Translations under genes and position numbers: made by a program
NCBI GenBank assembly: GCA_038087875.1
Contig: CM075979.1
Span: 17,236,001 to 17,300,000, forward strand
DNA: 64,000 nt
From: Malacoraja senta
Taxonomy: Eukaryota
Direction of reading: 5' to 3'
Notes under the pieces: generated by a model
The model's input: the letters and a program-made list of their open reading frames with translations, nothing else
Told to the model about the DNA's origin: nothing
Database searches by the model: none
Shown here: piece after piece, positions 5,002-63,869 of the stretch
Layout: every line of letters starts with the position of its first letter
Numbering within the stretch: the first letter of the stretch is position 1

Positions 5002-5154
5002 AGACTTTACCTCAGTCTGATGTAAAGACCTCCCACTGGTTTTAAAAATCAAATTTCTACATCACAAAACATCATTTGAATTTCAGTAATAAGATAATGG
5101 TGAGTATTACAAATAATAAATTACACATAACCAACTTTCTGAAATCTTGAAATC

Positions 5155-14850: not shown

Positions 14851-15107
14851 ATTACGGATTAAGGGACACATTTCAAATACCTTCTGCACCACCTTGTCCG
14901 GTATTAACTCATGGACCTCCTGGTCATTATTGTACAGTAAATATAATATTGATAGATATTTTCTCTTTATTGTTAAAATTTGATGAAATCCACTGCAATA
15001 GCACGCACCTCCTTTAGTTTTCCACCTGCATGCTGCTGCCATCTTCTGGACTGATTTATTATCACAGTATTTTGTTGTTGTTTGTTTCCCAAGTCTTCTT
15101 TGCCTAA

Positions 15108-19585: not shown

Positions 19586-19670
19586 TTATCTCCAGCCATA
19601 TGCATTCCTTCCAAACTTGTACATTAACCTTCTATGCACCCGTTCCAGAATTCCAGTTTTGTAATAATGT
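19586..19670 (-). CDS. ELF5: ELF5 last coding exon (end of ETS domain, [27 protein letters not shown])
   Basis: Acceptor TGTTTTTCAG| and phase 2 joins AG|A = Arg. [13 protein letters not shown] without the extra Gly is ELF5-like rather than ELF3/EHF-like (YYKREILERVDGRRL). Confidence 0.93.
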
Positions 19671-20993: not shown

Positions 20994-21189
20994 CTCAATG
21001 CTCTGCTTAGTTTCTCGTAGGTCATGTGCTCATTATTTTTCCTTTGTCCCCAGAGCTTAGCCAGAGAATCGGACTTCACAACTTTGAATATTCCTTCTCC
21101 TCTGTCTTCCCATTCCAAAATGCCGCTGTTTTTCTCAGGAGAGTGGAGAAGATTGCGAATAAATTCCCAAAGGTACTCTCTTTGCAAAC
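20994..21189 (-). CDS. ELF5: ELF5 ETS-domain exon, 196 nt ([14 protein letters not shown]...[11 protein letters not shown])
   Basis: Acceptor TTTTGCTTTCTCCTGAAG| and donor TGAG|GTAACA. It carries the ETS motifs [24 protein letters not shown] and [11 protein letters not shown]. Confidence 0.95.
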
Positions 21190-23145: not shown

Positions 23146-24087
23146 GTTTTAAAGAAGGAACTGCAGATGCTGGAAAATAGAAGGTACACAAAAATGCTGG
23201 AGAAACTCAGCGGGTGCAGCAGCATCTATGGAGCGAAGGAAATAGGCAACGTTTCGGGCCGAAACCCTTCTTCAGACTGATAGGGGGTGGGGAGAAGAAA
23301 GGAAAAAAGGAAAAAAGGCGGAGGAGGAGCCCGAGGGCTGGGGGATGGGAGGAGACAACCAGAGGGCTGATGAAGGGGAGGGGACAGCAAGGGCTAGCAG
23401 AGTTGGGAGATTTCAATGTTCATGCCCCCAGGATGTAGACTGCCCAAGCGGAATATGAGGTGCATTTCCTCCAATTTCCGGTGTTGCTCGCTGTGGCCAT
23501 GGAGGAGACCCAGGACAGAGAGGTCAGATACGGAATGGGAGGGGGAGTTGAAGTGCTGAGCCACCGGGAGGTCAGGTGAGCCACCGGGAGAGCATCCGCT
23601 GCTCTAGATGTCAGCTGATCTACATCGGTGAGACCAAGCGGAGGCTTGGCGATCGTTTCGCCGAACACCTCCGGTCGGTCCGCAATAACCTACCTGACCT
23701 CCCGGTGGCTCAGCACTTCAACTCCCCCTCCCATTCCGTATCTGACCTCTCTGTCCTGGGTCTCCTCCATGGCCACAGCGAGCAACACTGGAAATTGGAG
23801 GAAATGCACCTCATATTCCGCTTGGGCAGTCTACATCCTGGGGGCATGAACATTGAATTCTCCCAACTCTGCTAGCCCTTGCTGTCCCCTCCCCTTCATC
23901 AGCCCTCTGGTTGTCTCCTCCCATCCCCCAGCCCTCGGGCTCCTCCTCCGCCTTTTTTCCTTTTTTCCTTTCTTCTCCCCACCCCCTATCAATCTGAAGA
24001 AGGGTTTCGGCCCGAAACGTTGCCTATTTCCTTCGCTCCATAGATGCTGCTGCACCCGCTGAGTTTCTCCAGCATTTTTGTGTACCT
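23146..24087 (+). mobile_element. Penelope-like retroelement 3' end (GIY-YIG) with an inverted pLTR copy and a 14-bp TSD
   Basis: ORF 23576-23875 (CSRCQLIYIGETKRRLGDRFAEHLRSV...HFN) is a GIY-YIG endonuclease. Arms at ~23182-23577 and ~23692-24087 are near-perfect inverted repeats. The TSD ACAGTTAACATTAC is at 23132-23145 and 24088-24101. Confidence 0.92.
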
Positions 24088-31864: not shown

Positions 31865-32948
31865 TGTTACGGCCGCCAAAATTAAATACCTCAAAGGCCA
31901 ATAACATAATACAAAACCAGGTTCAAATGGAAATATTATTTATTTTTCACTAACAAAAAGAACTAAAACCTGGATCAAACAGAGAGGGGGTCGGATGGGC
32001 TAGCAAACAAAAGATAAAGGGTGCTCTGGCCGACCACTCAATGGGCCGTCGGACCAGAGACTCTAAACCGGCCTCAATGTTAAAATAAACCTGAAACAAA
32101 ACCACGAAAACAATAATGCCAGTCCCATCCTTCCCAAGCCAAATAAGTTAATACAGAATGAAGAGTTACATAAAGAACACTATGTGACTAGAGGGAGTGC
32201 AGAGAAGGTTCACCAGACTGATTCCTGGGATGTCAGGACTGTCTTATGAAGAAAGACTGGATAGACTTGGTTTATACTCTCTAGAATTTAGGAGATTGAG
32301 AGGGGATCTTATAGAAACTTACAAAATTCTTAAGGGGTTGGACAGGCTAGATGCAGGAAGATTGCTCCCGATGTTGGGGAAGTCCAGGACAAGGGGTCAC
32401 AGCTTAAGGATAAGGGGGAAATCCTTTAAAACCGAGATGAGAAGAACTTTTTTCACACAGAGAGTGGTGAATCTCTGGAACTCTCTGCCACAGAGGGTAG
32501 TCGAGGCCAGTTCATTGGCTATATTTAAGAGGGAGTTAGATGTGGCCCTTGTGGCTAAAGGGATCAGAGGGTATGGAGAGAAGGCAGGTACGGGATACTG
32601 AGTTGGATGATCAGCCATGATCATATTGAATGGCGGTGCAGGCTCGAAGGGCCGAATGGCCTACTCCTGCACCTAATTTCTATGTTTCTATGTTTCTACT
32701 ATGCAATCAAACAAACTAAACCAACACCAGACTGCTGCCACCAGTCTGAGGGGGAAGAGAGAGACAGAGAGAGAGACTGCCAGTCACATGGTCTTTTTAA
32801 GCTGAGGCTCCGTCATCAGGCTCACGTGATGCAGCTTGGGCCAGGAGCCTCCAATCAGGTCAGGAGCAGCCAGGCAGCAGGAGGTACTAATGGTAATCAG
32901 AGAAACAGGTTAATACATAATTAACACCAGCAGAGGGAGCGCATAACA
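31865..32948 (-). mobile_element. Solo LTR (TG...CA) with a 5-bp TSD, containing a CR1 3' insertion
   Basis: Starts TGTTAC and ends ATAACA, with ATGGG at 31860-31864 and 32949-32953. Minus-strand AATAAA at 31944-31939. Confidence 0.82.
32185..32697 (+). mobile_element. Young CR1 3' end nested in the solo LTR
   Basis: ORF 32197-32601 is intact to the ORF2 stop and has a (TTTCTATG)n tail. ACTATG on both sides is a possible TSD. Confidence 0.9.
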
Positions 32949-33739: not shown

Positions 33740-34105
33740 TAGATTTTCACTTACTGCAACTGCAGGAAAAATGTTCCCGATATTGGGGGAGTTCAGAACC
33801 AGGGGTCACAGTTTAAGAATAAAGGGTAGGCCAGTGAGGACTGAGATGAGGACCAACTTTCTTCACCCAGAAAGTTGTGAATCTGTGGAATTCTCTGCCC
33901 CAGAAAGCAGTGGAGACCAATTCACTGGATGTTTTCAAGAGAGAGTTACATTTAGCTCTTGGGGCTAGCAAAATCAAGGGATATGGGGAAAAAACAGGAA
34001 AGAGGTACTGATTTTAGATGAACAACCATGATCATATTGAATGGCAGTGCTGGCTCGAAGGGCCGAATGGCCTATTCCTGCACCTATTTTCTATGTTTCT
34101 ATGCT
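33740..34105 (+). mobile_element. CR1 3' fragment inside the hAT-like element
   Basis: GKMFPILGEFRTRGHSLRIKG...; typical CR1 tail ending in TTTCTATG. Confidence 0.85.
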
Positions 34106-40841: not shown

Positions 40842-43800
40842 GAGATATGGACTGTTGTACCCTGCAAGATTGAGAGTCATCTATAAGCAGAAGGAAACGT
40901 TTTTTACGGATCACTAGGAAGCATTGGCGTATGCCCAGAAGATCGCTCAGAAGACCGCGGACTTGAGTGTTGATTGAATAACATTCATATGATATCTTCA
41001 CCTTGCTGAGAATAAATGGAACTTTAAGTCACTTTACTTAAGGACTAATGAAAGTTGATAACGACAACTGAACAAACCGTATTGATGTGGACATATTATT
41101 TTAATATTTTAGTACTAATTATTAAGACTACTGTTATTATTATTAGAATAATTAGTTAAAAATATTAATTGCAAACAAGGTATAACCTGGTTATTTTATT
41201 AATTAAATTGAGCCATGTTTATTCCTTGTTTCTTTTTTTTCTTTTACATCAGACTAATAACTGACTACTACTTAACCAAGAGAGTAATAGTCTCTCATTA
41301 TATGATTACTAATCTTTTGGACCAAAATGGTTATAACATTAATCCCGTAAATTACTGAGTTTCTGTTTTGTTTTTTAGCGTGGATCTAGTAATAATTTTT
41401 TTTTCTAAGGTTACGGAAGTCCTTAGATGGCCAGCCACGTTAGTGTGGCTAACACTAACTACACTATTTGTAGATGTAGTTTCTTCTTTTTTCTTGCACT
41501 TTATTAATTTTTATTTTTTTATTTTCTTTCTTTATTTCTTACTTAATTTCTATCATAAAGTTGATTCGAATTATATGTATTATTGTGAAGAGGGGTCCGG
41601 GAGGAAGATCTATTCAATTTTAAACTCATCTGTCCTGTGTTCGGGTGGATTGTCTGGCTTACTGCGCTGGGCTACCTACTCTATTATAGACTACTCTAAC
41701 CATATGATGCAAGACGGTAATAGAAACATTGGGGGTCAAGGAATTACTTTTTGTAGCTGGAACGTTAAGGGAATTAATGACTCAATCAAGAGAGGTAAAG
41801 TATTAGCACACTTAAAATCACTTAATGCAGATGTAACATTTCTTCAAGAAACTCATCTTAAAAATGAAGCACAGCATAGATTGAAAGCAAAATGGATTGC
41901 TGAAACATATCACTTCATTCTCCCATAAGGCTAGAGGGGTTGCAATTGTAATCCGTAAAGGTATACCTTTTAAACACATATCAACTATTGCGGACAATAA
42001 TGGTAGATATATAATACTAGTGGGTGAATTATATATTTTTTAAAGTAATTCTTCTTAATGTCTATGGACCAAATTTTGATAACCCTTCGTTTTTTAAGAA
42101 TATACTTAATAATATCCCGGAAATCACACAACATAACTTGATAATTGGAGGAGATTTAAATTGTACACTAGACTCTTATTTAGATAGATCATCAAGACAA
42201 AGAAAAGCAAAATCCAAAACAAGGGAATTAATAAACTCATACATTAACTCTACTAATATCAAAGATGTTAGGAGAATTGAAAACCCATCTGGATTCATTC
42301 ATTCTATTCACCGGTAAATAAAACTTACTCAAGGATAGATTACTTTTTAGTAGACTCTAAGCTTATCCCATTTACTTATAATTCAAAATATCATAATATT
42401 ATAATTTCGGACCATGCACCTCTAACATTTATGATCAAACTAAGTGGAATGACTGAGAAGCAGACACAATGGAGACTTAATCCTCAGATTTTAAATGATA
42501 AAGCATGTTGTGAATATCTTATCACACAAATAAATATGTTTTTCGAGACTAATGATTTCCCTGAAATATCTCCCTCCCTTCTTTGGGAAACATTTAAAGC
42601 ATTTATACGAGGAGCGTTAATCTCGTAATAAAGAGAACCAGGCCAAACAACAGGAATTGGAAAAGGAGATAAGGCAATTAGATATGGAAAATGCAATCAC
42701 GCCCTCTACGATAATACATAATAAAATTGCAGCACTTAAATATAAGTTAAATCAACTATATTCAGATCAAATCATAAAACTTTATCAAAATACTAAACAG
42801 CTATAGTTTGAGTTTGGTGATAAACCACAAAAATTACTAGCACGTCAGCTCCAGAAACAGGAAGGGGAAAAAACAATTTACAAAATTAAATCTGATACGG
42901 GAGAAATGCTAACGTTACCCAAGGATATTAATGATAGATTTTCTCAATACTATCAAACACTTTATTCATCCAAAACAATAGTGGGCTCTGCAGGAATGGA
43001 ATCATTTTTACAGAAATGTAATCTTACAGGTTTAGATCTGAAAGAGTGGGAATTATTAGGGGCCAAAATATCAGTAAAAGATATTGAAGAATCTATCAGA
43101 TCTTTAAAAAATGGAAAGGCCGCTGGCCCGGATGGTTTAAATAGCGAATTTTATATAAAATTTCATGATCTGATCTCCCACACTTAAAGACACTATATAC
43201 TCATGCCTTCATGCAACAGAAACTAACAGAAACTTTAAACGAATCAACAATAATACTTATACCCAAAATGGATAAGGACCTTGAAGATCCAGGTTCATAT
43301 AGAGCAATCGCTCTCTTAAACACCGATCAGAAAATATTAACTAAAATTTTAGCCCATAGATTAAGTTTAGTGATTCATAAATTACTACACCCTGACCAAA
43401 CTGGCTTTATTCCAAAACGCTACTCGTATTATAATTTGAGACGATTATTTAATATTATATACTCAAACAGAATAGCTAATGTAGATTTAGCAGTCATCTC
43501 GTTAGATGCTGAGAAAGCATTCGATCAAGTGGAATGGCCCTATTTATTTTCGGTGATGGAAAAATGTCAATTGGGTGAGAAGTTTTGCACATGGGTTAAG
43601 CTTTTATACACTAACCCAACAGCTAGAATAATGACAAATCAAATGCTATCAACAAAATTTGATTTATCTAAAGGTTGCAGACAAGGATGCCCGTTATCAC
43701 CGTTATTATTTGCCCTTGCTATCGAACCACTAGCAGAAAGAGTTAGAGCACATCCAGAAATATATGGGTATAATACTAAAAATACAGTTAATAAAATCTC

Positions 43801-45818
43801 TCTATACGCAGACGATGTATTATTATATATTACAAATCCAGAAATCAGCATTCCAAACTTGTTAAATCTTATAACTCAATTTGGTTTATTTTCGGGATAA
43901 AGAATTAATTGGAACAAAAGTGAGATTATGCCAATAACGGAATCTAATTCATATATATTGCAACACTCACCTTTTAGAATAGTTAATGAAAAATTTAAAT
44001 ACCTTGGAATTTATGTGACAAAGAAATATAACTCTATTTAAATCAAATTTCATGCCTTTACTTAATAAATTGCATAAGAATATTCAATACTGGAAAACAC
44101 TTCTCATTTCAATGCTCGGTAGAATTAATGCTATAAAAATGATTTTCCTTCCGCAATTGCTATACCTCTTTCAATCAATCCCGATATATCTCCCAAAAAA
44201 ATTCTTTTAAAAAGTCGATTCTATTGTGACAAGTTTTATTTGGGATTATAAGAATCACAGAATAAGCAAAAAACACCTATGTAAACCCAAGACCAAAGGA
44301 AGATTCGTTTTACCAAATTTGTTATTCTATTTTTGGGCAGTCAATGTCAAAAATATGAATTTTTGGTTGGAAGATATGGATCAACAACCAGACTGGTTAA
44401 AGATGGAAAAGGAAGATTGTTTGCCTTTTGAAATTGGTCCGATCCTGTTAGCTCCTACAAAACTGAATTAAAAAATCTATAGTGAAAACCCTATAATATA
44501 TAGTGGAATTCGAATTTGGAATCAATTAAAAAAGACATTAAAATTGGATAATTTATCATTTTCTCTCCCCATTGCAAATAATCCTTCATTTAAACCCTCA
44601 GTGTTGGATAAAGGTTTTGTACAATGGAAAAATCATGGAATTAAAAAGATGGGACATCTTTATAGAAACGGTATTTTTCTTTCATTTCAGGAACTACAAC
44701 TGAATTATGGATTACATCCAAATAATTTTTTTAGATACTTACAACTTAAAGATTATGTTAAATCACATACACAAGAATACAGAACTAGAGAACCAGAGAT
44801 TCTAGATGAATGTTTGAATAAACACCCTAATACAGATAAATTAATATCTTATATTTATAATATTCTTTTAGACAGTGAGACTCCGTTGACGGAATTATAT
44901 AGATTAGCATGGGAAAAGGAATTAGCCCAACCTATAACAAAAGATATTTAGGATGAAAGTTTACAACATATACATCAATGTTCATTAAATGCCAGACACT
45001 CTTTAATACAATTTAAAGTACTACATAGATTGCATTATTCAAAAACAAAATTAAATAGAATCTTTCCTAATATCTCTCCTATTTGTGATAAATGCCAATA
45101 CTCATCAGCTAATTTAACCCATATTTTTGTAAATTGTATAAAAATTAAAAATTATTGGATGGATATTTTAAAAATAATCTCTGTAGTTGTTAATACTCAA
45201 CTGGATCCCGATCTTAAATTAATAATATTGGGCATATCAGAACAATACCTAAAACTTACAACAAACTAAATAAATTTCCTTTACTACAGTATAATAATTG
45301 GGAAAAAATTAATATTAAAATTTTGGAAAAATCCTGCAACCCCCACAATTAAGATGTGGATTATGGAGCTGTCGGAGACCTTATATTTGGAAAAAATTAG
45401 ATATGTCTTAATTGACAAACCAGAATTATTTACTAAAATATGGTCTCCATTTATAGATTATCTGAAGGGGTAGACTTGTGCCGGCGCGGAGGCCTGACTG
45501 AAACCTGAACCCAGGACTGGATGAATAGTTACGTTTTCTGACCTATGGACCTATCTCCTAAGTTGTATTATTGATAGTTTATCTTACTTTTTTAATTTCT
45601 TCTTTTAATTTCTTTATTTTTATTATCTATAAATATAAATAAATAATTAGAGGCAACGTTAATATGTAACCGATAAAGGAGGACCCCAGCTACTTTGGTA
45701 ATTGGGTACCCGGAACCCTGGATACTTAATATGTAATTGTTATACAAAGTTTGTAATGGGTTGGACTATGATATGCAGATACCTCTAATAAAAAATTACA
45801 ATTAAAAATTTTTTTAAA
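40842..45818 (+). mobile_element. Older 5'-truncated L1 (ORF1 C-terminus, spacer, degraded ORF2, A-rich tail)
   Basis: GLLYPARLRV...EALAYAQKI at the 5' end. ORF2 fragments show SWNVKGIN, FLQETHL, SLDAEKAFDQV and SLYADD. A possible degenerate TSD is AAGGAACAAT 40832-40841 / AAGGAGCAAT 45819-45828. Confidence 0.92.
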
Positions 45819-48660: not shown

Positions 48661-49420
48661 ATTCCCCAGAAATTCACAAGTATTTAAAACATCCAAAAGT
48701 ACTACAAATTAAATCAGGCTATTAAAGATTTCATAAACTAAAAATAAAAAAGTTTGAAATGTTTAAAATAATTAAATAAATTTAAATATATAAAATTATC
48801 AATTAAGTACTTTCAATTAATTCAAAAAGTTGTAAGTATTTCTGGAACTTGCCTATCTCCCTTAAAGCTGCTCCGCTCAATGCAAGTGAATGGAGTCACT
48901 GGATCTGCACAGGGTCCAGCCTAACACAGGTTTATCAGATGGGTTTAAGCGTGACTGCTTGATGGGGATTTCAAAGTCAGAGTACAATCAGAATGACAGC
49001 AAGGATCTCCTAAATAGTTCAGGACTTTCATGTTCCCACGAGACATCCTCGGATGTACTTTAGATTGTCAGTCCAGCCCTCCCCACAAGATCGCCGTACT
49101 TAGCTTCCTTATAGTGATCAGCTTCAGAAACTAGAGTTAATCTCTGGCCTGACATAACAGGCATCATGAAGGCCAATTGTAATGCTCCATCATCACTGGG
49201 ACCATAACCCAACTAATAAAGTGTAAACCAAGTCTGAGCCTGTGACATTCTGGCCTGCATCTTACAGTATCACACCAGAGATTTACTTTCAGAACAGGAA
49301 GGAACTGCAGATGCTGGTTTAAACCGAAGATAGACACAAAATGCTGGAGAAACTCAGCGGGATGGACAGTGTCTCTGGACAGAAGGAATGGATGACGTTT
49401 CAGGTCGAGACCCTTATTCA

Positions 49421-49570
49421 GATATATGAGTAAGTGAGAATCGTATTTTGCTTTCTCCTGAAGGTTTGCAAAGATAGTACCTTTGGGAATTTATTCATGA
49501 TCTTCTCCACTCCCCTGAGAAAAACAGCGGCATTTTGGAATGGGAAGACAGAGGAGAAGGAATCTTCGAA
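49421..49570 (+). pseudogene. ELF5: Inverted partial duplicate of the ELF5 ETS exon and its 3' splice site
   Basis: 49464-49570 matches the minus strand of 21189-21083 with about 7 substitutions, including GAG>TAG at 49475-49477. It retains GATATATGAGTAAGTGAGA...TTTTGCTTTCTCCTGAAG and the adjoining Penelope-derived repeat. Confidence 0.93.
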
Positions 49571-49639: not shown

Positions 49640-49953
49640 ATAAAATAAAAGTTCTTACCTCCCTGCTCCTTGAAGCAGGGGAATCCCACATGGTCATAAA
49701 GAATTGGTGAAGTCAAAGTGCCGCAAATAGTTAGGTCCCTTAAATAGCAGTGGTAGCCAAAATAATCTGACATCATGCTCTGAAATGTAATTAAACAAGT
49801 TAATTTCCCTACATGAAAAATAACACACTAGTTTGTTTAATCTGAGGCTAAATTCTCTGAGTCTATACAACTTTTGTTGTGTAACTTCTTTAATTAATAA
49901 GTTTGTTATATTTCTCTAGCAGATAAAAATACGTTTAAAAAAGGAAACTACTT
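49640..49953. repeat. 314-bp direct repeat, left copy (giant TSD of the L1)
   Basis: Identical by eye to 56597-56910. It begins at the L1 endonuclease-type site AT/AAAA. Confidence 0.95.
49659..49776 (-). CDS. ELF5: ELF5 first coding exon, copy B (exon 49779-49659; MMSDYFGYHCYLRDLTICGTLTSPILYDHVGFPCFKEQG)
   Basis: Acceptor TACATTTCAG|AGCATG and donor GAG|GTAAGA. 39 aa plus 1 nt, phase 1. Aligns by eye with the human ELF5 N-terminus (YLRDLTICGTLTS ~ FLPNASFCDPLMS; FPCFKEQ ~ YPAFEHQ). Confidence 0.78.
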
Positions 49954-50141
49954 TCCGGTTGCGACATGCTCTGCTAGCAGTCGCAAACTTTTTAGCTCCG
50001 CTGAAAAAATCGCGATTTTTCGCGTTAAAATCGGGTCTGGAGGTCGGGACCGTTTTTAAAAACTTACCGGAGCTTCATGTCGCGGTGCTGATGACGTCAT
50101 CAGTAAGCGCCGCGATTTTAACGGAGGGAAAGTCATTTTAA

Positions 50142-51137
50142 ATGAAAAGTACATCTCCAGGTCAGAGCCCACAGAGGAAAATCTCAAAACATCTGCTGAA
50201 GACTCTGGAACAGCAAGAAACTTCAGAACTGACCTCTGGAGAGGTCTCTGGAATGGCTACTCGATCTGCAAAAGAGAAAACCGAAATGGAGGACTTAAGA
50301 AACTCGGTAAGAGATATCAAAAAGGATATGGAAGCTGGGAACAGTAAATTGATAGCCGGTAATGATAAAATACTTGAGGGTATTGAGGCTCTCCAAAAAA
50401 GAATTGAAGGTGTGGAAAAAGGACTATCGATAAAAATTGAAAAGGTGGCAGAAGAGACCACAAAGATGTTTGAGGTTGTGCACGAAACTGTGGCTGCAAA
50501 TGCATCTGCAGTGAATGATTTGGAAGCTGCTGTGGAAGTGATGGCTGGAGAGATGCAGACTATGAAGTCAGAAATAGATAGTCTCAAGAGCCAAGTCACA
50601 AAGGTTTCGAATAAATGTGTTGACCTAGAAGCTCGCTCAAGACGTCAAAATATAAGAATACGTGGTGTAAAAGAGGGAGCTGAGGGGGACAATGTTTGTG
50701 AGTTCGCTGCCAACCTAATTAAACACGTACTGAAGCTACCAGAAGTACCTGTAATTGAAGTAGCACATCGACTCCCCAGATTTAAATCAAGATCTCAAGG
50801 AGAACGTGCCTACCCACGACAGATCATAATTAAACTTCGGGATATCTCAACAATGGAAGCGCTGATGAAAAAAATCAACCACGGAGAGAAGATGATGTAC
50901 AGAGGTGATACTATTAAACTCCTACGGGACTACCCTTATGAGATTGAGCAAAAGAGAAGAAAGTTCTCACAGACCAGAGAAGTTCTTTATGGTGTTAAGG
51001 GAGTTTTGTGTGGAGTGTTTTATCCGGCTAGAATGCGTATCACCTTTGAGGGAGTGTCAAAAACATTCACTAATTCGGATGAATCTCTCAAATACGCTCA
51101 AGAAATCGCGACTAAGGCTGCATCAACTGGAGACTGA
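50142..51137 (+). CDS. L1 ORF1p (coiled coil plus RRM/CTD), 331 aa
   Basis: Heptad-rich N-terminal half, DLEARSRRQNIRIRGVKE, EVAHRL, RQIIIKL, LLRDYP and YPARMRITF motifs. Confidence 0.93.
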   Translation: MKSTSPGQSPQRKISKHLLKTLEQQETSELTSGEVSGMATRSAKEKTEMEDLRNSVRDIKKDMEAGNSKLIAGNDKILEGIEALQKRIEGVEKGLSIKIEKVAEETTKMFEVVHETVAANASAVNDLEAAVEVMAGEMQTMKSEIDSLKSQVTKVSNKCVDLEARSRRQNIRIRGVKEGAEGDNVCEFAANLIKHVLKLPEVPVIEVAHRLPRFKSRSQGERAYPRQIIIKLRDISTMEALMKKINHGEKMMYRGDTIKLLRDYPYEIEQKRRKFSQTREVLYGVKGVLCGVFYPARMRITFEGVSKTFTNSDESLKYAQEIATKAASTGD

Positions 51138-52344
51138 AAACCAAGACGACATGAACAAACGAACTTGCTTATTCTTCCAACAAGAGTATCACAAGGAAAG
51201 TGAATTAACTGAACACTGATTTTTTATTTTTTATTTGACTTCAAGCAACAGATTCTTAGTGAGACGTGGCTAGACATTATTATCTTCGCTGGAACATTGT
51301 GCTATGTAATTCAAGGACACTACGTGCTCAAACGAGGAAAACCTGATAACGGGACGAACTGCTGGGCTGAGAGTGAAAAACATCACATGGCTTATATTGT
51401 TTATAAAAAACTGAAAAAACTGAGAACTAATAATAATTAACAATTAACAATACTAATATAGAAATAGCAATTGAAATAGATAAAAAATGTGCAGTCTGCT
51501 CTGTTTAGCAGATAACAGCAAGTGCTATGCAGCTCGAGAGTGGAGGGAGGGGGAGACCGGGTACCTGGCATAACTCCAGGAGCCAGACTCCCGTTAACCC
51601 TTCCAGCGAACAGCTCATTTTTAACAATATTAAAATCAATTTAAAATAGTTAAGAGATAATATACACTCGAGGTTGATATGAAAAATATATACGGCTTAT
51701 ATAGTTTTACAAAATGCTGAGAATTAATCATAATTAATAATTAACAATACTAATATAGAAATAATATTTGAAACTGATAAAACTGTGGTGCCTGCGTCAT
51801 AACGCAGACAGCAGTTATCACCTATGTTCGCAGCTCGTGGAGAGGAGAGGAGATCAGGCACCTGGCACAATTCCAGGAACCTGACTCCGGTTAATCCACT
51901 CAGTAAACCGCTCACTTTAACAATACTAAACTCATTTTAAAATAGTTAAGAGATAAAGAGTGAGTAGGATATGGAATCGAATACATTTGACATATATATA
52001 AATTGTAACTGGGTGAAATAGAACTGAATTGGAAACGGTAATGACCCCATAGATTTTGGGTAATAAATACAGCGGGGCTAACTTTATACCAACTACGCCG
52101 GAAGCGTTATGGATGTCGTACCCCACAGACGAGTGGGCCACTCACTACGGTGTTGAAATTTTAGACACCGTAAATTTATTTGATTTATATATATTTTTTT
52201 TAATCACAATATGTCACATCTGTGTGTTTTTTCTTCAAGGACAATCGCGCAGGAGAACTACCAAGGAAGTCTATAATAGAAATACTCCCAAAATAACCAG
52301 AGTCCGGAGGTATGAACGCACCACAATAATTAAGGTCATTAAAA

Positions 52345-55300
52345 TTGGTAAAAATGCATGACGACAATCAAAAGAAAATAGGAGGAATCACATTATGTAG
52401 TTGGAATATAAGGGGGATTAATGAACCTATTAAAAGGGGCAAGATACTAGCTCAGTTGAAATCATACAACACGGACATAGCGTTTCTACAGGAAACACAT
52501 CTTAAACAGCAAGATCAGACAAGACTGAGGGCGAACTGGATAGGCCAAACATTTCACTCTTCATTTACCTCCAAATCTAGAGGTACTGCAATTATTATTC
52601 GTAAAGGAATTCCATTTAAATCAAAGAACACTATTTTAGATAAGGAAGGGAGATATCTTATAGTAGCAGGGGAGATCAATAATATGCCAATTACGCTGGT
52701 AAACATATATGCGCCCAACTTTGATAACCCTCAATTTTTTAATAAAATTCTGAATATAATTGCAGAATCTAATTATCAAAATGTTATAATCGGAGGAGAT
52801 TTTAATTGTGTTTTAGATCCTTATTTAGATAAATCGATGCAAAAACAAAAAGGTCAGACGAAATCTAAAACCAGTGAACTCTTACACACATATATGGAAA
52901 ACACAAATATAACAGATGTATGGAGGATTGCAAACCCGACGGGAAGGGATTACTCGTTTTATTCAATGGTGCATAAAACATATTCACGGATAGACTATTT
53001 TCTAGTGGATACAAAATTAATTTCGCAATCTCTGAATCCTAAATATCATATTAACGCGATCTCAGATCATTCTCCGTTAACTTTTGTTCTAAAACTAGAA
53101 GGAATGTCTATGAATAAACCGTTCTGGAGGTTTAACTCACAAATTTTAAAAGACCCTCAAGGGAGTATCTATCTAAAAAAACAGATGGATCTATTTTTTG
53201 AGTTAAATGATACACCAGAGATATCCCCCACGTTATTATGGGAATCCTTCAAAGCATTTATAAGAGGAGTCATTATTTCATTTCAAGCTTATCAAAATAA
53301 AAAGAATAAGAATGAACAAAGACACTTAGAAGATCAAATAAAACAGTTAGATATAGATAATGCTAAAGACCCAACTATGGATAAACATAATAAAATACTA
53401 CTACTGAAATTTCAGTTAAATAAATTACTGTCAGAGAAAGTTATAACATTATTTCAAATCACAAAACAAGAACACTTCGAATTCGGGGACAAACCCCACA
53501 AACTTCTAGCACGACAACTTAAAAAACGGGAAAAAGAGAATGCAATATTAAAGATTAAATCAGATAGAGGGGAAGTATTAACACTACCCAAGGATATTAA
53601 TAAAAGATTTGCTCAATTTTACCAGAATCTATACACATCTAAAACGTCAATAGACAATAATAAAATCTCAGAATTTTTAGATAATTGTAATCTACCACAA
53701 TTAGAACGCAGGGAACAAGAGGAACTGGGAGCACAAATTACTTCTAAGGAGATAGAAGACACAATAAAAACACTAAAAAATGGAAAAACACCAGGACCAG
53801 ACGGATTCAGTAATGAATTTTATAAATCTTTTTATGATATAGTTACTCCACGATTACAAAAAATGTATACATATGCTTATAAAGAGCAAAACCTACCTGA
53901 AACACTAGCGGAATCAACGATCATATTAATACTTAAAAAAGATAAAAATATAGAAGAACCAGGATCATATAGAGCTATTGCTTTGTTAAATACGGATCAG
54001 AAAATAATAGCAAAAACATTAGCCAATAGATTAAGCAAGTATGTTAGTAGACTAATACATGAGGATCAAACAGGATTTATACCTAAGAGACACTCATTTA
54101 ATAATTTGAGACGTTTGCTTAACATAATGCATTCACATAAATCTTATGACCAAGAGTTAGCTATCATCTCACTGGACGCAGAAAAAGCGTTTGATCAAGT
54201 AGAATGGGACTATATGATCAAAGTATTGCAAAAATTCCAATTGGGAGAAAACTTTATTGCATGGATAAAACTACTATATAACAAACCTACGGCTAGAATA
54301 CTAACTAATAATATATTATCTTCAAAATTCGAATTATCTAGGGGCAACAGACAAGGATGTTCACTATCACCGCTGTTATTTGCTTTGGTAATTGAACCCC
54401 TTGCTGAAAAAATAAGAACACACTCGAATATTCACGGTTATAACACAAAATATTCAAACAACAAACTATCCCTATATGCTGATGATGTACTACTGTACAT
54501 CACAAAACCACAAATTAGTATACCAAATATATTAAACTTAATTGAGGACTTTGGATCCTTTTCAGGATATAGAATAAATTGGAACAAAAGTGAAATTATG
54601 TCGATTAAACCAAAAGACTCAACACATCTCAGGAAATTCCCTTTTAAAATAGCTATGGAAAAATTCAAATATTTAGGAATTGAGATTACTAGAAATTACC
54701 ATGATATGTTTAAAGCTAATTATAATCCCCTACTTAAGAAATTAAATAATCTGATTAAATTTTGGAAAACACTTCCGATGTCCTTAATAGGTAGGATAAA
54801 TGCTATAAAAATGATTTTCTTACCACAAATCCTTTACCTATTTCAATCAATACCTATATATCTCCCAAAAAAGTTTTTCAAAAAACTGGACTCAGACATT
54901 ACAAATTTTATATGGGATTACAAATCCCACAGAATACAAAGAACACACCTTAATAAACGAAAAGAGTTGGGGGGTCTAGCGCTCCCTAACTTTATGTATT
55001 ATAACTGGGCAGTAAATATTAAAAATATGATTCACCTGCTGGACAATTCTGCCCAGCAGGTGGACTGGATTATAATGGAAAAAGGGGATTGCTCCCCGAA
55101 TAATATAGGAGCGATTATTCTCTCTCCAATAAATTTGAATAATAAAAATTATAATAAAAATCCAATTATATATAGCACTATTAGAACATGGAAGCAAATA
55201 AAACAGAATCTAAAATTAAGAAACCTATCTCTCTTAATACCAATAGTCAATAACCCATCGTTTAAACCTTCAATCATAGATAAAGCATTTATACAATGGG

Positions 55301-56145
55301 AAAGAATGGGAATTAAAACGCTCGAAGATCTGTATGAATTAGAAAAATTACTATCATTCCAACAACTACAACTGAAATATAATTTGAAAAATAATCAATA
55401 TTTTAAATATATACAAATCTGTGACTATTTGAAAACACACACAAAAGATTATTATAATATGCCTTCCGACTTACTAGATGAAGCAATGAAGACAAAGGCG
55501 GAATCAGTTAATTTAATATCATACTTATATAATATCATCTTAAATATAGAAATACCCACAACAGATGGAATTAGAAGAGATTGGGAACAAGATCTAGGTA
55601 TAAAAATTTCAAAAGAGAGTTGGGATAATCATTTATTACAGGTGCATAAATGCTCGATCAACGTACGACATACGCTTATCCAATTTAAAACATTACATAG
55701 ATTATATTATTCAAAAACCAAACTAAATAAAATCTTTCCTAACGTCTCACCAATCTGTGATAAATGTATATGTCAAGAAGCTACCATAGCACATTCTTTT
55801 GTTTTTTGTACAAAAATCCAAAAATTCTGGTTTGAAATATTTGATATTTTTTCAAAATTAATCAAAATAAAACTGGTACCAAAACCAGAATGGATTATTT
55901 TTGGAATATCGGAAGGTATTCCTGAATTAAACGTGTATCAGAAGAATTTACTCAATTATGGGCTAATAATGGGAAAAAAGCTTATACTTAAATTCTGGAA
56001 AAATGCGCCCACACCAACAATAAAAATGTGGACATCAAATATGTTGGAAACATTACATCTGGAAGAGATGAGATTCCTCCTAGTAGGCAAAGTAGATCAA
56101 TTTCAAAAGACGTGGTCTACGTTTTTGGACCTATTACAAGCATGA
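52345..56145 (+). CDS. L1 ORF2p (APE endonuclease plus reverse transcriptase), uninterrupted; first ATG at 52354
   Basis: SWNIRGIN, FLQETH, GGDFN, SRIDY and SDHS (APE); SLDAEKAFD, RQGCSLSP and LYADD (RT); C-terminal C-x2-C...H...C motif. Confidence 0.97.
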   Translation: MVKMHDDNQKKIGGITLCSWNIRGINEPIKRGKILAQLKSYNTDIAFLQETHLKQQDQTRLRANWIGQTFHSSFTSKSRGTAIIIRKGIPFKSKNTILDKEGRYLIVAGEINNMPITLVNIYAPNFDNPQFFNKILNIIAESNYQNVIIGGDFNCVLDPYLDKSMQKQKGQTKSKTSELLHTYMENTNITDVWRIANPTGRDYSFYSMVHKTYSRIDYFLVDTKLISQSLNPKYHINAISDHSPLTFVLKLEGMSMNKPFWRFNSQILKDPQGSIYLKKQMDLFFELNDTPEISPTLLWESFKAFIRGVIISFQAYQNKKNKNEQRHLEDQIKQLDIDNAKDPTMDKHNKILLLKFQLNKLLSEKVITLFQITKQEHFEFGDKPHKLLARQLKKREKENAILKIKSDRGEVLTLPKDINKRFAQFYQNLYTSKTSIDNNKISEFLDNCNLPQLERREQEELGAQITSKEIEDTIKTLKNGKTPGPDGFSNEFYKSFYDIVTPRLQKMYTYAYKEQNLPETLAESTIILILKKDKNIEEPGSYRAIALLNTDQKIIAKTLANRLSKYVSRLIHEDQTGFIPKRHSFNNLRRLLNIMHSHKSYDQELAIISLDAEKAFDQVEWDYMIKVLQKFQLGENFIAWIKLLYNKPTARILTNNILSSKFELSRGNRQGCSLSPLLFALVIEPLAEKIRTHSNIHGYNTKYSNNKLSLYADDVLLYITKPQISIPNILNLIEDFGSFSGYRINWNKSEIMSIKPKDSTHLRKFPFKIAMEKFKYLGIEITRNYHDMFKANYNPLLKKLNNLIKFWKTLPMSLIGRINAIKMIFLPQILYLFQSIPIYLPKKFFKKLDSDITNFIWDYKSHRIQRTHLNKRKELGGLALPNFMYYNWAVNIKNMIHLLDNSAQQVDWIIMEKGDCSPNNIGAIILSPINLNNKNYNKNPIIYSTIRTWKQIKQNLKLRNLSLLIPIVNNPSFKPSIIDKAFIQWERMGIKTLEDLYELEKLLSFQQLQLKYNLKNNQYFKYIQICDYLKTHTKDYYNMPSDLLDEAMKTKAESVNLISYLYNIILNIEIPTTDGIRRDWEQDLGIKISKESWDNHLLQVHKCSINVRHTLIQFKTLHRLYYSKTKLNKIFPNVSPICDKCICQEATIAHSFVFCTKIQKFWFEIFDIFSKLIKIKLVPKPEWIIFGISEGIPELNVYQKNLLNYGLIMGKKLILKFWKNAPTPTIKMWTSNMLETLHLEEMRFLLVGKVDQFQKTWSTFLDLLQA

Positions 56146-56552
56146 GGTGCAATAGTAATTTAGAAAAACAAATAAATAAATAAAAGGTATCTGGACCTGG
56201 TAATGGGAGGTAAAATAAAAACAGACTTGGTTGGTAGTTCCTTCTCTATGAAGTATGGTATAAGAGTTATAATAGAGCGATTGTTCCTTCTTTCTTTCTC
56301 TTTTTTTTTCTAGGGTCTATTTTCTAACTTTTCTTCCTTCTCTAACCTCTTTTCTAAGGGGCTTTCTTTTCCCAACACTCTTTTGCACTTCACAACCTTT
56401 GCGCACTTTCTTCACTTTTCTTACTTCTTTCTTTTTCTTTCTTAAAGTTTAAAAAAGTGAAGCGGTACAAAAAATGTATTAATATATACGTGTTGTACAT
56501 TACTGTAATCTACCGTACTTCTAAAAAATAAAAAAAAATAAAAAATAAAAAA

Positions 56553-56590
<38 letters not shown>

Positions 56591-56596
56591 AATAAA

Positions 56597-56910
56597 ATAA
56601 AATAAAAGTTCTTACCTCCCTGCTCCTTGAAGCAGGGGAATCCCACATGGTCATAAAGAATTGGTGAAGTCAAAGTGCCGCAAATAGTTAGGTCCCTTAA
56701 ATAGCAGTGGTAGCCAAAATAATCTGACATCATGCTCTGAAATGTAATTAAACAAGTTAATTTCCCTACATGAAAAATAACACACTAGTTTGTTTAATCT
56801 GAGGCTAAATTCTCTGAGTCTATACAACTTTTGTTGTGTAACTTCTTTAATTAATAAGTTTGTTATATTTCTCTAGCAGATAAAAATACGTTTAAAAAAG
56901 GAAACTACTT
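56597..56910. repeat. 314-bp direct repeat, right copy
   Basis: Directly follows the L1 poly(A); identical by eye to 49640-49953. Confidence 0.95.
56616..56733 (-). CDS. ELF5: ELF5 first coding exon, copy A (exon 56736-56616)
   Basis: Identical to copy B, with the acceptor and donor both inside the duplicated block. Confidence 0.78.
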
Positions 56911-56912
56911 AC

Positions 56913-57026
56913 TCATAACCATGTAAACATGCAGGATAAACAGCAACTGCACATAAATTTGTACACACAACTTCTCTCAGCAAGAGAAGAATGTTTCTCA
57001 TCACCGATTAGATCATTTTATTTATA
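56913..57026 (-). promoter_or_regulatory. ELF5: Predicted ELF5 TATA box (57026-57019) and non-coding exon 1 (~56993-56913)
   Basis: Minus-strand TATAAATA, and the donor ATGA|GTAAGT at 56913/56912, 176 nt above the copy A acceptor. The TSS position is estimated. Confidence 0.55.
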
Positions 57027-58365
57027 AAGGACACACCTCTTTGAAGTCACATACTGTATATTATTTTGTAATATAAATTAGTTAATGGAAAATTCCACTG
57101 AACTAGATTGACAGAGTCCCCTGTGTTCTGATTTTAAAATGCCTCAGAGGGGAAATGTTATATCCGTCTGCAAAATGTAAATATTCAGCATGATGCTAAG
57201 GTACATTCCAACAATTACATAAGGTGTGGTGACGTAAGGAACTGCAGATGCTGGTTTACCAAAAAAAGACACAAAGTGCTGGAGTAACGTAGTGGGTCAG
57301 GCAGCGTCTCAGGAGAACATGGATAGGTGACGTTTCAGGTTGGGCCCGTTCTTCAGACTAATTGTGGATGTGCGGAGAGGGAACTGGGAGAGGTGGGAAC
57401 AGGGCAAAGCCATGCAAGTGATAGGTGGATACACGTGAGGGACGGCAGTTTTGATAGATATATGGTTGGACAAAGGCCAGAGATAAAGGGCCAAAAGTGC
57501 GAGACGAGGATAGAAGTGCAAATTGTTACGGAATTTAGGTGAAAGGAGGGAGGGGAGAAACGGGTATGAATCCATATGGCACAGGGAGGAGAGGGGGGGA
57601 TAAAGAGGGGGAGGGATGTTAGTTAGCTAGTTACCTGAAATTGGAGAGATCAATGTTTATCCGGTTAGATTATAAGCTACCCAAGATGAATACGAGGTGC
57701 TGTTCCTCCAGTTTGTGTCAGGCCTCTCTCTGGCAATGAAGGAAGCCCAGGACAGAGAGGTCAGTATAAGAATGGGAAGAGGAGTTAAAATGATTAGCAA
57801 CTGGGAGATTCAGCAGTCCTTGGCGGATCGAATGCAAATGTTCGGCAAAACCATCACCTAGCCTATACTTGGTCGTGTTGATGTATAGGAGAACATCAAG
57901 AACACCAATGCAATGGATGATATTAGAGGAGGTGCACATGAAACCCTATTTCACCTGAAAGGGCTGCTGTGGTGTCCGGATGGATGTGAGGGAGATAGTA
58001 TAGGGAAGTGTGACATCTCCTGCCGTTACATGGAAAAGTATCTGGAGAGGAGGTTGTTTTCAGTGCAAAGGGATTAGTGAACATAGTAGTTGCGGAGGGA
58101 ACGGTTTCTGCGAAGGCAGAAAGGGTGCAGATGGGAAGATGTGACTTTTGGCGGGATCAGGTTGAAGGTAGCGGAAATGTTGAAGAATAGTAAGATTAAA
58201 CGAGAACTTACCAGTTTGAAGTTTGATCTTTATTTTATGAGGAGTTACGATGAGCGATTACGTGAAGAAGCCCGCCAGATAAGAGTAGTTGAAGTGACAT
58301 AGTAAGATTAGAGAAAACTAGAACTACCAGATGACCTTTATGATACGAGGGTTGGGAGCGGAGGG

Positions 58366-60690: not shown

Positions 60691-62237
60691 TTGGAACCCT
60701 TGTATACTGTGCAAAATAAACCAATCACATGTTATCATTTAGTTTATAAACGGATCTGAATCTCATGTTATCATTGTCATTTGTACAAAAAACAAGTGTA
60801 AATATTACCAACTTGTAAATGCTCCACATACCCCATGTTTCGGAAGAACCAGACCCACCTACCTCCATGGTTACCGGTGGTCTTATGGTAAGCCCAAAGG
60901 ACCCTGATGTGGTACTATTCCAGTCCTTGATTGGAGAGTAGGACTGGTAGGGTGTGTGGATTTCATATTTCCTGAGACCGGCTTGGACCTTGGCCTGAAA
61001 GACCTCTGCCCAACTTTCAAGCTGCCACCAGCTTCAGTGAACTGCTTACTACCGATGAGACGTGGGGTGTGTCGTCGCCAAAACGATGAAGCTTTGTTCA
61101 TCGTTGGTACCTTGATTAGGCCGACAGCTTTTGCTTCCTCATCCAGGTATACCTGTTGGATAAGTCTTACCTGAAGAGAAGATTTGGCAGCTGGTTTCAT
61201 TTCCTGGATTTCATGCCTCCAATGTCACCCCTGATAGCGCTGTTCACTGCCGGCACTTGTAGCGTGAGGGGAACTCTGGCCCCTTCTGGGTTTTCTGCCA
61301 ACGGCTGGAACCAACTCTTCCGGCAGTAACCCCTTCATTTGAGAGTATTTCCTTGGAGCCATATGCATGTGCTCCAGTATGTTCCACGGACATACTTTCG
61401 AATTTGAAGTCAGTTACACACTGACCACTCGCACTCCCCTCCACAGAGAGGGAGATTCGTAGGCAGCCCTGAAAACAGGTGCTGCCGCAGGCCCCTGCGC
61501 TAATATGGCCCCTCCAACGGACTTATATCATGATTGAGCATCACATTCGTAGGTAGCCCTGAAAACAGGTGCTGCCGCAGGCCCCTGTGGATACCTGCGC
61601 TGACATGGCCCCTCCTACGGACCTATAATCAGGATTTCTGCTCTGAGTCAGACAGGAACTGACCCCGAATGCTGTCCTCCTCAGAGAGGGAGACATTGTG
61701 CAGCTCTGAAACAGGTGCCACTGCCGTGGGCCCCCGAGGAGACCCGCGCTGATAACTCCCTCCTTTGGAGTATCATTGTGGAGCAACCTCTCCATCAGGT
61801 GCTCCATGTGGGTTTAGACCCACATATAGGTTAACCTACAAACCTATACGTCTTTGGAGTGTGGGAGGAAACCGGAGCACCTGGAGAAAACCCACGCGGT
61901 TCACGGGCAAAAACAGTTAGGTTTGCCAAGTTACCCGGTGTAGGGGCACCAAGAACCAGAGGATGTAGTTGAGGCCAGTTCATTGGCTATATTTAAGAGG
62001 GAGTTAGATGTGGCCCTTGTGGCTAAAGGGATCAGGGGGTATGGAGAGAAGGCAGGCACGGGATACTGAGTTGGATGATCAGCCATGATCATATTGAATG
62101 GTGGTGCAGGCTCGAAGGGCCGAATAGCCTACTCCTGCACCTATTTTCTATGTTTCTATGTTTTCTAGACGTCCGCAGACGCTACCCATTGAAGGAGGGG
62201 AACCCTCCTGGCCCGACTCGTCCGAGTCCAAAGGCCT

Positions 62238-63026: not shown

Positions 63027-63267
63027 TAAACATAGAAACATAAAAATTAGGTGCAGGAGTAGGCCATTCGGCCCTTCGAGCCTGCACCGCCATTTGATAT
63101 GATCATGGCTGATCATCCAACTCAGTATCCCATCCCTGCCTTCTCTCCATACCCCCTGATCCCTTTAGCCACAAGGGCCACATCTAACTCCCTCTTAAAT
63201 ATAGCCAATGAACTGGCCTCAACTACCTTCTGTGGCAGAGAATTCCACAGATTCACCACTCTCTGTG
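63027..63267 (-). mobile_element. Young CR1 3' end
   Basis: Near-identical to the CR1 tails at 14.1-14.33 kb and 32.45-32.7 kb. Confidence 0.9.
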
Positions 63268-63869
63268 TAGTCCAGATAATTGTGGGACTCATTGGGTTTG
63301 CAGTAGATGTCAGTCAATAGTCTGTCCCCTCAGATGGAGACAGAGAGATCAAGAAAGGGGAGAGAGGTGTCAAAGATAGTCCAAGTGAATTTGAGGGTAG
63401 GGTGGAAGTTAGTGGGAAGGTTAATTAGACACGAGTAGATAGAGGAAGTATTATACATTATTATAATAGATATTTACTGCAGCCAACAATTAACTTTATT
63501 ACACTTACACTTTCAAAGCAGGAAAATTAGTTCTAGGGGTAGGGAATATGTTTGTGATATTATTTTTCTCTGATTTCACATTTTCATAACATGAAAATAT
63601 GTTTCTCATTTCCGTTGCATTTTTCCATGCAAATAGATGAAAAGTCATTTTTATTTTTAAGAGCCATTTCAAAAATGTTTTGAATGTTTCTGTCAACCAG
63701 AATGTTTATGTCTGGCAGAAGGAGATGGAAAAGCAAGAACAGCTCATTCAGAGGCATCAATGGGGAACTTCAATGCAAACGTTCTGGGTGACTTTTCAGT
63801 TCTATGAATGAGGTAAACCGTTGCCATATATTGAGCTCTCCATAAGCAGCTTACTACTTAGGAAGCGGA

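Follow-up and report, generated by a model that had tools for sequence, protein, structure and literature searches.

Very long L1 target-site duplications have reportedly been observed in cultured human cells, in the work of Gilbert and colleagues in 2002 and 2005 and of Symer and colleagues in 2002. To our knowledge, they have been documented almost solely with engineered L1s, in cell lines that are tumour-derived or repair-deficient. Natural insertions are usually called by pipelines that limit the duplication to ~30–50 bp, and natural cases of long duplication therefore go unseen. In the limited literature searched, no natural germline L1 insertion with a long duplication containing an exon was found. 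Among L1 events in HeLa cells, duplications of more than 100 bp occur in fewer than 10%, and in NER-deficient cells they occur in most events (Servant et al., 2017; PMC5223499). The same authors raise the possibility that exons are duplicated in this way and that long duplications recombine with each other. According to PMC2912911, which cites Gilbert et al. (2005), long duplications in cultured cells went with 5'-truncated inserts, and full-length inserts had duplications of 10–17 bp.

The window analysed here, a 64-kb stretch of skate genomic DNA with no N anywhere, contains a full-length L1-clade non-LTR retrotransposon of 6,643 bp (49954–56596, + strand), identified from its ORFs and from Pfam and PDB matches and lying antisense to its host gene. 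The element stands between two copies of a direct repeat, which the first-pass annotation had described as a 314-bp identity and read as a target-site duplication. The identity holds. Positions 49640–49953 (copy A) and 56597–56910 (copy B), neither of which is assigned a strand, match over 314 bp with 0 mismatches, as self-BLAST and repeat finding agree, and the identity extends not even 1 base beyond either end. The geometry fits a target-site duplication. Copy A abuts the L1 5' end (...ggaaactactt/TCCGGTTGCG), with the first base of the L1 5'UTR (49954) directly after it, and copy B abuts the L1 A-tail (...AAATAAATAAA/ataaaataaaagttc), with the A-rich tail (56521–56596) directly before it. 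As had been claimed, the repeat starts directly after the poly(A) at an endonuclease site, and the nicked strand is T-rich at the target, reading CTTTTATTTTAT/GC. No third copy of the repeat was found in the 64-kb window. The assembly at the insertion locus was taken at face value.

Each copy of the repeat is continuous with native sequence on one side. Copy B runs into a native right flank, the donor and promoter side of putative exon 1, where it completes a GTAAGT donor, and copy A runs into a native left flank, entering intron 2 of the − strand gene. This one-sided continuity is what would be expected from an interval that was once single-copy. The interval comprises 174 of the 176 nt of putative intron 1, the entire 121-nt putative start-codon exon and 19 nt of intron 2. 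Copy B ends at 56910, the third base of the consensus GTAAGT donor of putative exon 1. The donor GT (56912–56911) lies beyond this position and is therefore not duplicated, in agreement with the annotation.

The element itself was annotated as an intact L1, and this description is borne out, as both ORFs are open, both encoded proteins have L1 matches and the catalytic motifs are present. The 5'UTR (49954–50141, + strand; 188 bp) is CpG-rich, with an observed/expected ratio of 1.78, and closes with an in-frame stop just ahead of the ORF1 ATG. ORF1 (50142–51137, + strand) encodes 331 aa with a coiled coil, an RRM and a C-terminal domain, and matches L1 ORF1p of PDB 2ykp over residues 122–312 (E 3.6e-6). 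The only Pfam matches of ORF1 are of the coiled-coil type. Transposase_22 is absent at E<0.01, and the match to L1 ORF1p is therefore regarded as distant. An unusually long spacer of 1.2 kb separates the two ORFs (51138–52353, + strand). It contains two tandem units of ~250 bp each (51414–51660 and 51711–51956; 77% identity, period 297) and a 101-aa ORF without a Pfam match. ORF2 (52354–56145, + strand), which encodes 1,263 aa counted from the ATG, comprises an APE-type endonuclease, a reverse transcriptase and a C-terminal Cys motif. It aligns end to end with human ORF2p (residues 15–1260 against 8–1247 of 8sxt; E 1.8e-186), matches Exo_endo_phos and RVT_1 in Pfam, and retains the motifs WNIRG, LQET, GDFN, RIDY, SDH, YADD and CDKC...H....C. 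The remainder (56146–56596, + strand) is a 3'UTR, extending to ~56520, and the 76-nt A-rich tail, within which is a pure run of 34 A (56555–56588). An Rfam scan of 48.5–58 kb gave no match.

The pure A run, the CpG-rich 5'UTR, the open ORFs and the complete catalytic motifs fit a young element, and the L1 at 49954–56596 is apparently competent. Judged by the cultured-cell inserts described in PMC2912911, where long duplications accompanied 5'-truncated inserts, the combination of a full-length L1 and a long duplication is atypical. The 5' side of the element holds a complete ORF1 and the 188-bp CpG-rich UTR. Position 49954 is the putative canonical 5' end of this L1 family. Another full-length copy of the family was not found, the nearest ORF2 in the database search being 53% identical, and this lack of a comparison copy was counted against a single insertion event.

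A second L1 in the window, older and 81% identical to the intact element, is 5'-inverted and truncated (2407–5001, + strand; 2388–5020 including duplications). The inversion is of the twin-priming type. Both elements share the 3' end ...GTACTTCTAA, which in the older copy ends at 5001. The older copy is flanked by a duplication of 19 bp (2388–2406 and 5002–5020), and a family-wide habit of long duplications was rejected on this ground. It is missing at the orthologous site of Amblyraja radiata, which indicates lineage-specific L1 activity.

The structure at 49640–56910 is most probably the product of one recent target-primed L1 insertion, in which the second strand was broken ~307–314 nt from the first nick. 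The L1 endonuclease would have nicked the − strand at the T-rich site 5'-CTTTTATTTTAT/GC-3' (between 49639 and 49640 of the + strand). The T-rich 3' end would then have primed on the poly(A) tail, yielding a full-length cDNA. The break in the + strand would have come ~307–314 nt away instead of 7–20 nt, where ...AACTACTT met ACTCATAAC before the insertion. Both long single-stranded stretches would then have been filled in, leaving a copy of the interval on either side of the L1. The end of the tail is similar to the target (AT AAAAT AAAAG), so that the left boundary is ambiguous by at most ~7 nt and the true duplication is 307–314 bp. Long-duplication L1 insertions are recognized by a direct repeat of more than 100 bp that abuts both L1 ends, a poly(A) tail and an endonuclease-type site, all of which were found here; the length of 307–314 bp lies outside the canonical 7–20 bp. 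The repeat, its exact fit to both ends of the L1, the intact state of the element and the frame arithmetic can be read from the sequence; a distant second-strand break, use of the duplicated exon in mRNA and any consequences for the gene are inferred. Transduction, either 5' or 3', was rejected as a source of the repeat because its geometry does not fit. Endonuclease-independent insertion was also rejected, as the element carries a tail and a duplication and lies at a T-rich site.

The host gene had been named ELF5, and this name stood in part. Its ETS-domain exon (20994–21189, − strand; 196 nt; Pfam Ets, E 4.2e-22) finds its best PDB match in ELF5 (1wwx, 100 bits), ahead of EHF (88) and ELF3 (82), and its phase fits the 121-nt exon. 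The last coding exon (19586–19670, − strand) ends in ...GWR followed by the stop. The ETS exon region has a 238-bp inverted copy at 49333–49570. The gene adjoins RAG1, lying ~9 kb upstream of it, and no PNT domain was detected in the window either by tblastn with full-length ELF5-type proteins or with an HMM built from 34 PNT domains. By these predictions the host gene is an ELF5-like ETS gene without a detectable PNT domain, not canonical ELF5. RAG1 in the window is 96% identical to that of A. radiata, and the host is thus a skate.

Two putative start-codon exons of 121 nt are now present, copy B (56616–56736, − strand; ATG at 56733) in the native upstream context and copy A (49659–49779, − strand; ATG at 49776) in the native downstream context. 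The segment had been annotated as complete within the repeat, and it is: on the − strand, each copy has a tttcag acceptor, an ATG from the 4th base and a GTAAGA donor. Its designation as a start-codon exon is probable, because splice consensus, phase compatibility and product length agree. Spliced in silico to the ETS exon, it is in frame, and the product has 132 aa, or 131 aa if translation starts at the second ATG. In the A. radiata orthologue, the longest product annotated has 131 aa, with a CDS that ends at the orthologous stop codon. The 39-aa peptide of the exon found no significant match by BLASTP against 150 ETS-family representatives, and this part of the annotation is accordingly weaker. 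A by-eye alignment of the peptide with ELF5 N-termini was dropped as evidence, since BLASTP was not significant. The absence of significant N-terminal similarity to ELF5 and the absence of PNT from the gene were both counted against the main reading. The upstream exon 1 of the annotation is likewise kept as putative. This non-coding exon (56913–57026, − strand), drawn from the sequence alone, has a consensus GTAAGT donor (GT at 56912–56911) and a TATAAA (57026–57021) ~110 nt upstream of that donor. It also carries four upstream ATGs, which call for caution.

These features bear on a reading in which the insertion, though real, leaves the gene unaffected, either because the 121-nt segment is unused or because the ELF5-like gene is a PNT-less paralogue in decay. 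The missing PNT exon across the window, the non-significant N-terminal homology and the four upstream ATGs of putative exon 1 all agree with such a reading. So do the non-conservative changes of the A. radiata gene (I-to-N and L-to-S) at conserved ETS positions, which suggest that the ELF5-like gene may be weakly constrained and which were also counted against the main reading. It is nevertheless rather unlikely, as the segment has a consensus acceptor and donor and a phase that matches the ETS exon, the predicted product equals the annotated 131 aa of A. radiata in length, and the ETS domain is open and high-scoring.

Another reading is an assembly artefact, in which the individual was heterozygous for an L1 insertion of the ordinary kind, with a short duplication, and the assembler or polisher joined the empty and filled haplotypes, so that ~300 bp of right flank was written twice. 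Assemblies are known to contain false duplications where a structural variant is heterozygous, and complete identity of copies A and B (100%) is what such an error would yield. Exact look-ups in public assemblies of the ORFs spanning the filled 3' junction, of the ORF that leads out of copy A into intron 2 and of two ORFs inside or across the repeat returned no record, and this absence of junction matches was counted on the side of an artefact. The same look-up of ORF1 and ORF2 returned no record, nor did the exact RAG1 sequence match, so that the genome of the window seems not to be among these resources, and a homologue search with the 96-aa ORF that holds the last ETS exon gave no candidates. 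An artefact is, however, improbable. The extra ~300 bp would have to fall precisely where a short 5' duplication meets the L1's first base, and the insertion point shows no gap, N or partial L1 sequence. Also, the entire 6.6-kb element is assembled unbroken in a window without N, which suggests that long reads were used.

A two-step origin, in which a prior tandem duplication of 314 bp later received the L1 at the junction of its units or a rearrangement after insertion made the repeat, is exceedingly improbable: small local duplications do exist at the locus, such as the inverted ETS-exon copy, but the insertion would have had to hit the unit junction precisely (about 1 chance in 314) and to lack a duplication of its own, the tail leads into the start of the interval and not into a repeat of its end, and copies A and B are undiverged.

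A single target-primed insertion is therefore preferred, and its age can be estimated from A. radiata. The A. radiata locus compared consists of RAG1 and 10 kb of flank; it reaches window position 19865, 30 kb short of the insertion site, and over this locus the two genomes differ by 4–6%. Set against that difference, the undiverged copies A and B lead us to infer that no more than roughly a fifth of the time since the split from A. radiata has passed since the insertion.

With the single insertion, the two identical putative start exons are placed 6.96 kb apart. Either copy alone, spliced in silico, would give the normal 132-aa protein. The earlier frame arithmetic is correct: inclusion of both 121-nt copies (B+A) gives 67 aa, with a stop at codon 68 in the second copy, upstream of two exon junctions. 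A transcript of this kind should be a target of NMD. The 314-bp repeats could recombine, which would remove the L1 scarlessly. A bolder reading combines a heritable allele from a repair-proficient germline with a functional duplicated exon, an L1 antisense promoter and NMD of transcripts with both copies; taken jointly, these are very unlikely to be true. If they were, copy A would be transcribed from the antisense side of the CpG-rich L1 5'UTR, which lies directly upstream, and the ELF5-like gene would thereby acquire a second set of promoter and first coding exon, driven by the L1. NMD would destroy those transcripts of the old promoter in which both copies are included. One retrotransposition would then have rewired the regulation of a gene, reversibly by recombination between the repeats.

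Long duplications being known from cell culture, the skate L1 adds a rare natural example to a known class, and it would represent a rare natural case of a retrotransposon-duplicated exon, probably the start-codon exon of a small ELF5-like gene. A clean germline case would indicate that a distant second-strand break occurs in normal animals, that long duplication is not limited to truncated inserts and that a coding exon can be duplicated in one step. The locus also provides a natural test of how two identical start exons flanking an antisense L1 are spliced, and of whether flanking repeats of 314 bp cause scarless loss of an L1. Were it an assembly error, it would be a useful warning for gene-gain analyses.

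Several known systems resemble parts of this locus. As in poison exons and NMD-triggering tandem exon duplications, predicted double inclusion shifts the frame and introduces a stop before exon junctions. Unlike known poison exons, the two copies are split by a 6.8-kb intron that is mostly antisense L1. The host gene resembles human and mouse ELF5 (ESE-2, an epithelium-specific ETS factor) in its ETS domain, which is closest to ELF5 among solved structures, and in the placing of introns within and ahead of the ETS domain, which fits ELF5-type models. Human RAG1 and ELF5 lie on one chromosome arm, 11p. The skate gene differs from human and mouse ELF5 in having no PNT, only 132 aa, an N-terminus that is not recognisably homologous, an ETS-exon identity of ~71–73% and a position directly upstream of RAG1. 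The insertion shares with canonical L1 target-primed reverse transcription a T-rich first nick, a 3' poly(A), a direct repeat and intact ORF1 and ORF2, whereas its duplication is ~20 times the usual length. The closest resemblance in that respect is to the long-duplication L1s of cultured cells, which likewise combine a repeat of hundreds of bp, a polyadenylated L1 and a T-rich endonuclease site, and for which a second-strand break far from the first nick is the accepted mechanism. Those cases are somatic and involve engineered human L1s in tumour or repair-deficient lines, with inserts that, according to PMC2912911, are mostly 5'-truncated. In contrast, the skate element is native and full-length, and its insertion is germline-transmitted, occurs in a cartilaginous fish and contains a coding exon.

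The two repeats that flank the L1, copy A (49640-49953) and copy B (56597-56910), match at every one of their 314 bp and cannot be extended by one base on either side. This same pair was recovered by self-BLAST and by a separate repeat search, neither of which found a third copy in the window, and a chance origin for an exact repeat of this length is ruled out. Copy B begins one base past the A-rich tail of the L1 (...AAATAAATAAA|ATAAAATAAAAGTTC), and the last base of copy A immediately precedes the 5'UTR (...GGAAACTACTT|TCCGGTTGCG). At the left boundary, the nicked (-) strand has the sequence CTTTTATTTTAT/GC, T-rich as is typical of L1 endonuclease sites. Because the target looks like the end of the tail, the position of this boundary is uncertain by as much as ~7 nt, which gives a duplication of 307-314 bp. 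Copy A, L1 and copy B are arranged in the manner of a target-site duplication. The first-pass annotation had described an L1 between equal 314-bp target-site duplications, with the repeat starting at an endonuclease-type site right after the poly(A), and the exact match, the abutment of the repeat on both L1 ends, the T-rich nicked strand and the tail junction bear this out.

The L1 is a single element of 6,643 bp on the + strand (49954-56596). A 188-bp 5'UTR with a CpG observed/expected ratio of 1.78 is followed by ORF1 (50142-51137, 331 aa), ORF2 (1,263 aa, from an ATG at 52354 to 56145), a 3'UTR of ~375 bp and an A-rich tail of 76 nt, which includes a pure run of 34 A. ORF1 matches human L1 ORF1p (2ykp) in the RRM and C-terminal domains (E 3.6e-6). 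ORF2 has Pfam matches to Exo_endo_phos and RVT_1, and residues 15-1260 align with human L1 ORF2p (8sxt, E 1.8e-186). The endonuclease motifs WNIRG, LQET, GDFN, RIDY and SDH were all found, as were the YADD box and the C-terminal Cys/His motif. Both ORFs are open, and the element belongs to the L1 clade; 'intact', as it had been called, is apt for the open frames, a sense that does not extend to competence. The best ORF2 match among the proteins searched reaches only 53% identity, and 49954 is thus a putative canonical 5' end. The 1.2-kb spacer between the ORFs (51138-52353, + strand) is far longer than that of human L1, which measures 63 bp. It contains two ~250-bp tandem units (period 297) that are 77% identical, and it has no Pfam match and no other copy within the window. 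An internal promoter, an IRES or acquired sequence are possibilities for its role.

On the - strand, the ETS-domain exon (21189..20994; Pfam Ets, E 4.2e-22) finds its best match among solved structures in ELF5 (100 bits, versus 88 for EHF and 82 for ELF3), and is only 71-75% identical to ELF5-type representatives. The last exon lies at 19670..19586 (-). No PNT domain exon was found in the window, either by tblastn with full-length ELF5-type proteins or with an HMM from 34 PNT domains. The name ELF5 given earlier is corrected accordingly: the gene is a PNT-less ELF5-like ETS gene adjoining RAG1. It ends ~9.4 kb upstream of RAG1 and shares its orientation. RAG1 itself (7078-10161, -) is an intact single exon of 1,027 aa.

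The 121-nt segment present in both repeats has a tttcag acceptor and a GTAAGA donor, and its 118 coding nt join in frame with the ETS exon (196 nt) and the last exon (85 nt). The spliced product is 132 aa or, from the second of two adjacent ATGs, exactly 131 aa; the longest product of the annotated Amblyraja radiata gene upstream of RAG1, which has the same orthologous stop codon, is 131 aa. Because of the in-frame splice, the length match and the two splice sites, there is good indirect evidence that a PNT-less ELF5-like gene with three coding exons has this segment as its start-codon exon, in agreement with the first-pass annotation, which had placed such an exon inside the repeat. The 39-aa start-exon peptide showed no significant similarity to ELF5 N-termini. 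A putative exon 1 is plausible, with a consensus donor (GT 56912-56911), TATAAA ~110 nt upstream and four ATGs between them. In the orthologous A. radiata locus (L001, fetched via RAG1), the last ETS exon (L001:199-282) reads HYYKTGNLERVHRRSMYKF... and is orthologous to window 19670-19586; conserved ETS positions that are I and L in the window and in other ETS factors have become N and S there, respectively. These changes hint at relaxed or weak constraint on the gene in A. radiata. It is unlikely that the 121-nt exon or the ELF5-like gene is non-functional; if so, the structural finding would stand and the 'poison exon' reading would be emptied. Intron 2 also holds an old partial exon duplication at 49333-49570 (+ strand, 88% identical to 21315-21083 on the - strand): an inverted copy, with an in-frame stop, that covers the ETS exon's 5' part and the intron upstream of it. 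Copy A of the start exon is only ~90 bp away.

Of the 176 nt of putative intron 1, 174 fall within the duplicated interval, along with the entire 121-nt exon and 19 nt from intron 2. The acceptor region and the donor are therefore the same for the two exon copies. Splicing in just one copy would yield the normal 132-aa product. With both included, the predicted product is 67 aa long and its stop lies in the second copy, ahead of two exon junctions; in-silico splicing agrees with the earlier claim of this product. The intact L1 is antisense to the ELF5-like gene, as are the remaining L1 fragments of the same intron. Poly(A) signals are few on the antisense strand of the intact L1, where AATAAA occurs six times, versus 28 times on its sense strand. 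One older, decayed L1 in this intron (41368-45160, +), likewise antisense, retains endonuclease and RT fragments and is ~70-72% identical to the intact element. The 314-bp direct repeats could recombine to remove the L1 without a scar; removal of L1 by recombination between long duplications has been proposed before (PMC5223499).

Native continuity is found on one side only of each 314-bp copy. Copy B with the right flank forms the complete consensus GTAAGT donor on the - strand, and copy A with the left flank continues into the intron, which is the expectation for a formerly single-copy interval. An assembly error at a heterozygous L1 insertion is improbable: ~300 bp of right flank would have to be written, without a gap, at the exact point where a short 5' duplication meets the first base of the L1, and the whole window contains no N. 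A tandem duplication that existed beforehand and took up the L1 precisely where its units join needs two coincidences and is scarcely credible.

The window RAG1 is 96% identical to that of the thorny skate A. radiata and 80-84% identical to those of rays and sharks, and DNA identity to the orthologous A. radiata locus is 94-96%, which makes the source of the window a different skate. A second L1 (2407-5001), 81% identical to the intact L1, lies in the stretch covered by this locus. Its 5' end is inverted, as is typical of twin priming, and an ordinary 19-bp duplication flanks it (2388-2406 and 5002-5020). This insertion is absent from the orthologous A. radiata locus, and L1 has therefore been active in the window's lineage since the split. 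The 19-bp duplication indicates that L1 duplications in this lineage are usually short; long duplication as a habit of the family is thus rejected, and the 314-bp duplication is an outlier. With no differences in 314 bp, the divergence of copies A and B is below ~1% at 95% confidence. Because the window and A. radiata diverge by 4-6%, the insertion would fall within roughly the most recent fifth of the interval since their split. The long pure A run, CpG-rich UTR and open ORFs agree with a young insertion.

Other repeats were also observed. A near-perfect inverted repeat in the long intron of the ELF5-like gene (23182-23577 and 23692-24087) has arms of 396 bp that are 99.2% identical and stand 114 bp apart; it may represent a foldback element, or a local feature due to assembly or a palindrome. 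The tandem array at 16959-17590 has a very strong excess of G over C (GC skew 0.52 at 16-18 kb) and aligns weakly to the A. radiata locus (77%). Members of a ~125-bp dispersed family, 77-88% identical, occur at 49298-49422, 57236-57370, 16624-16768, 23154-23296 and 23973-24083. Some lie near the 314-bp duplication, ~220 bp away from copy A on the left and ~330 bp from copy B on the right; the family has no relation to the duplication itself. A ~750-bp family (14096-14851, 1070-1843, 32183-32698, 33761-34103, 61956-62167 and 63028-63268) probably consists of SINEs or LINE tails that were active recently; identity between its copies reaches 98%, and it also occurs in the A. radiata locus.

L1 duplications usually measure 5-30 bp, and those >100 bp make up <10% of inserts from HeLa cells; in NER-deficient cells, most inserts have duplications >100 bp, with a median of 1.5 kb (PMC5223499). 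Long duplications were ascribed to a distant second nick, and possible exon duplication was pointed out (PMC5223499). The mechanism of the 314-bp duplication would be of a kind already known, because long duplications from a distant second nick have been reported in cultured cells. In Kojima's summary of the HeLa data, full-length and 5'-inverted inserts have duplications of 10-17 bp and extreme duplications accompany 5'-truncated inserts (PMC2912911), whereas here 314 bp flank a full-length L1. No natural counterpart of an exon-containing long L1 duplication was found in a literature search of incomplete coverage. The present case is a rare natural example and is unusual in that the L1 is native and full-length, belongs to the germline of a wild cartilaginous fish, and is flanked by a repeat that encloses an entire coding exon.
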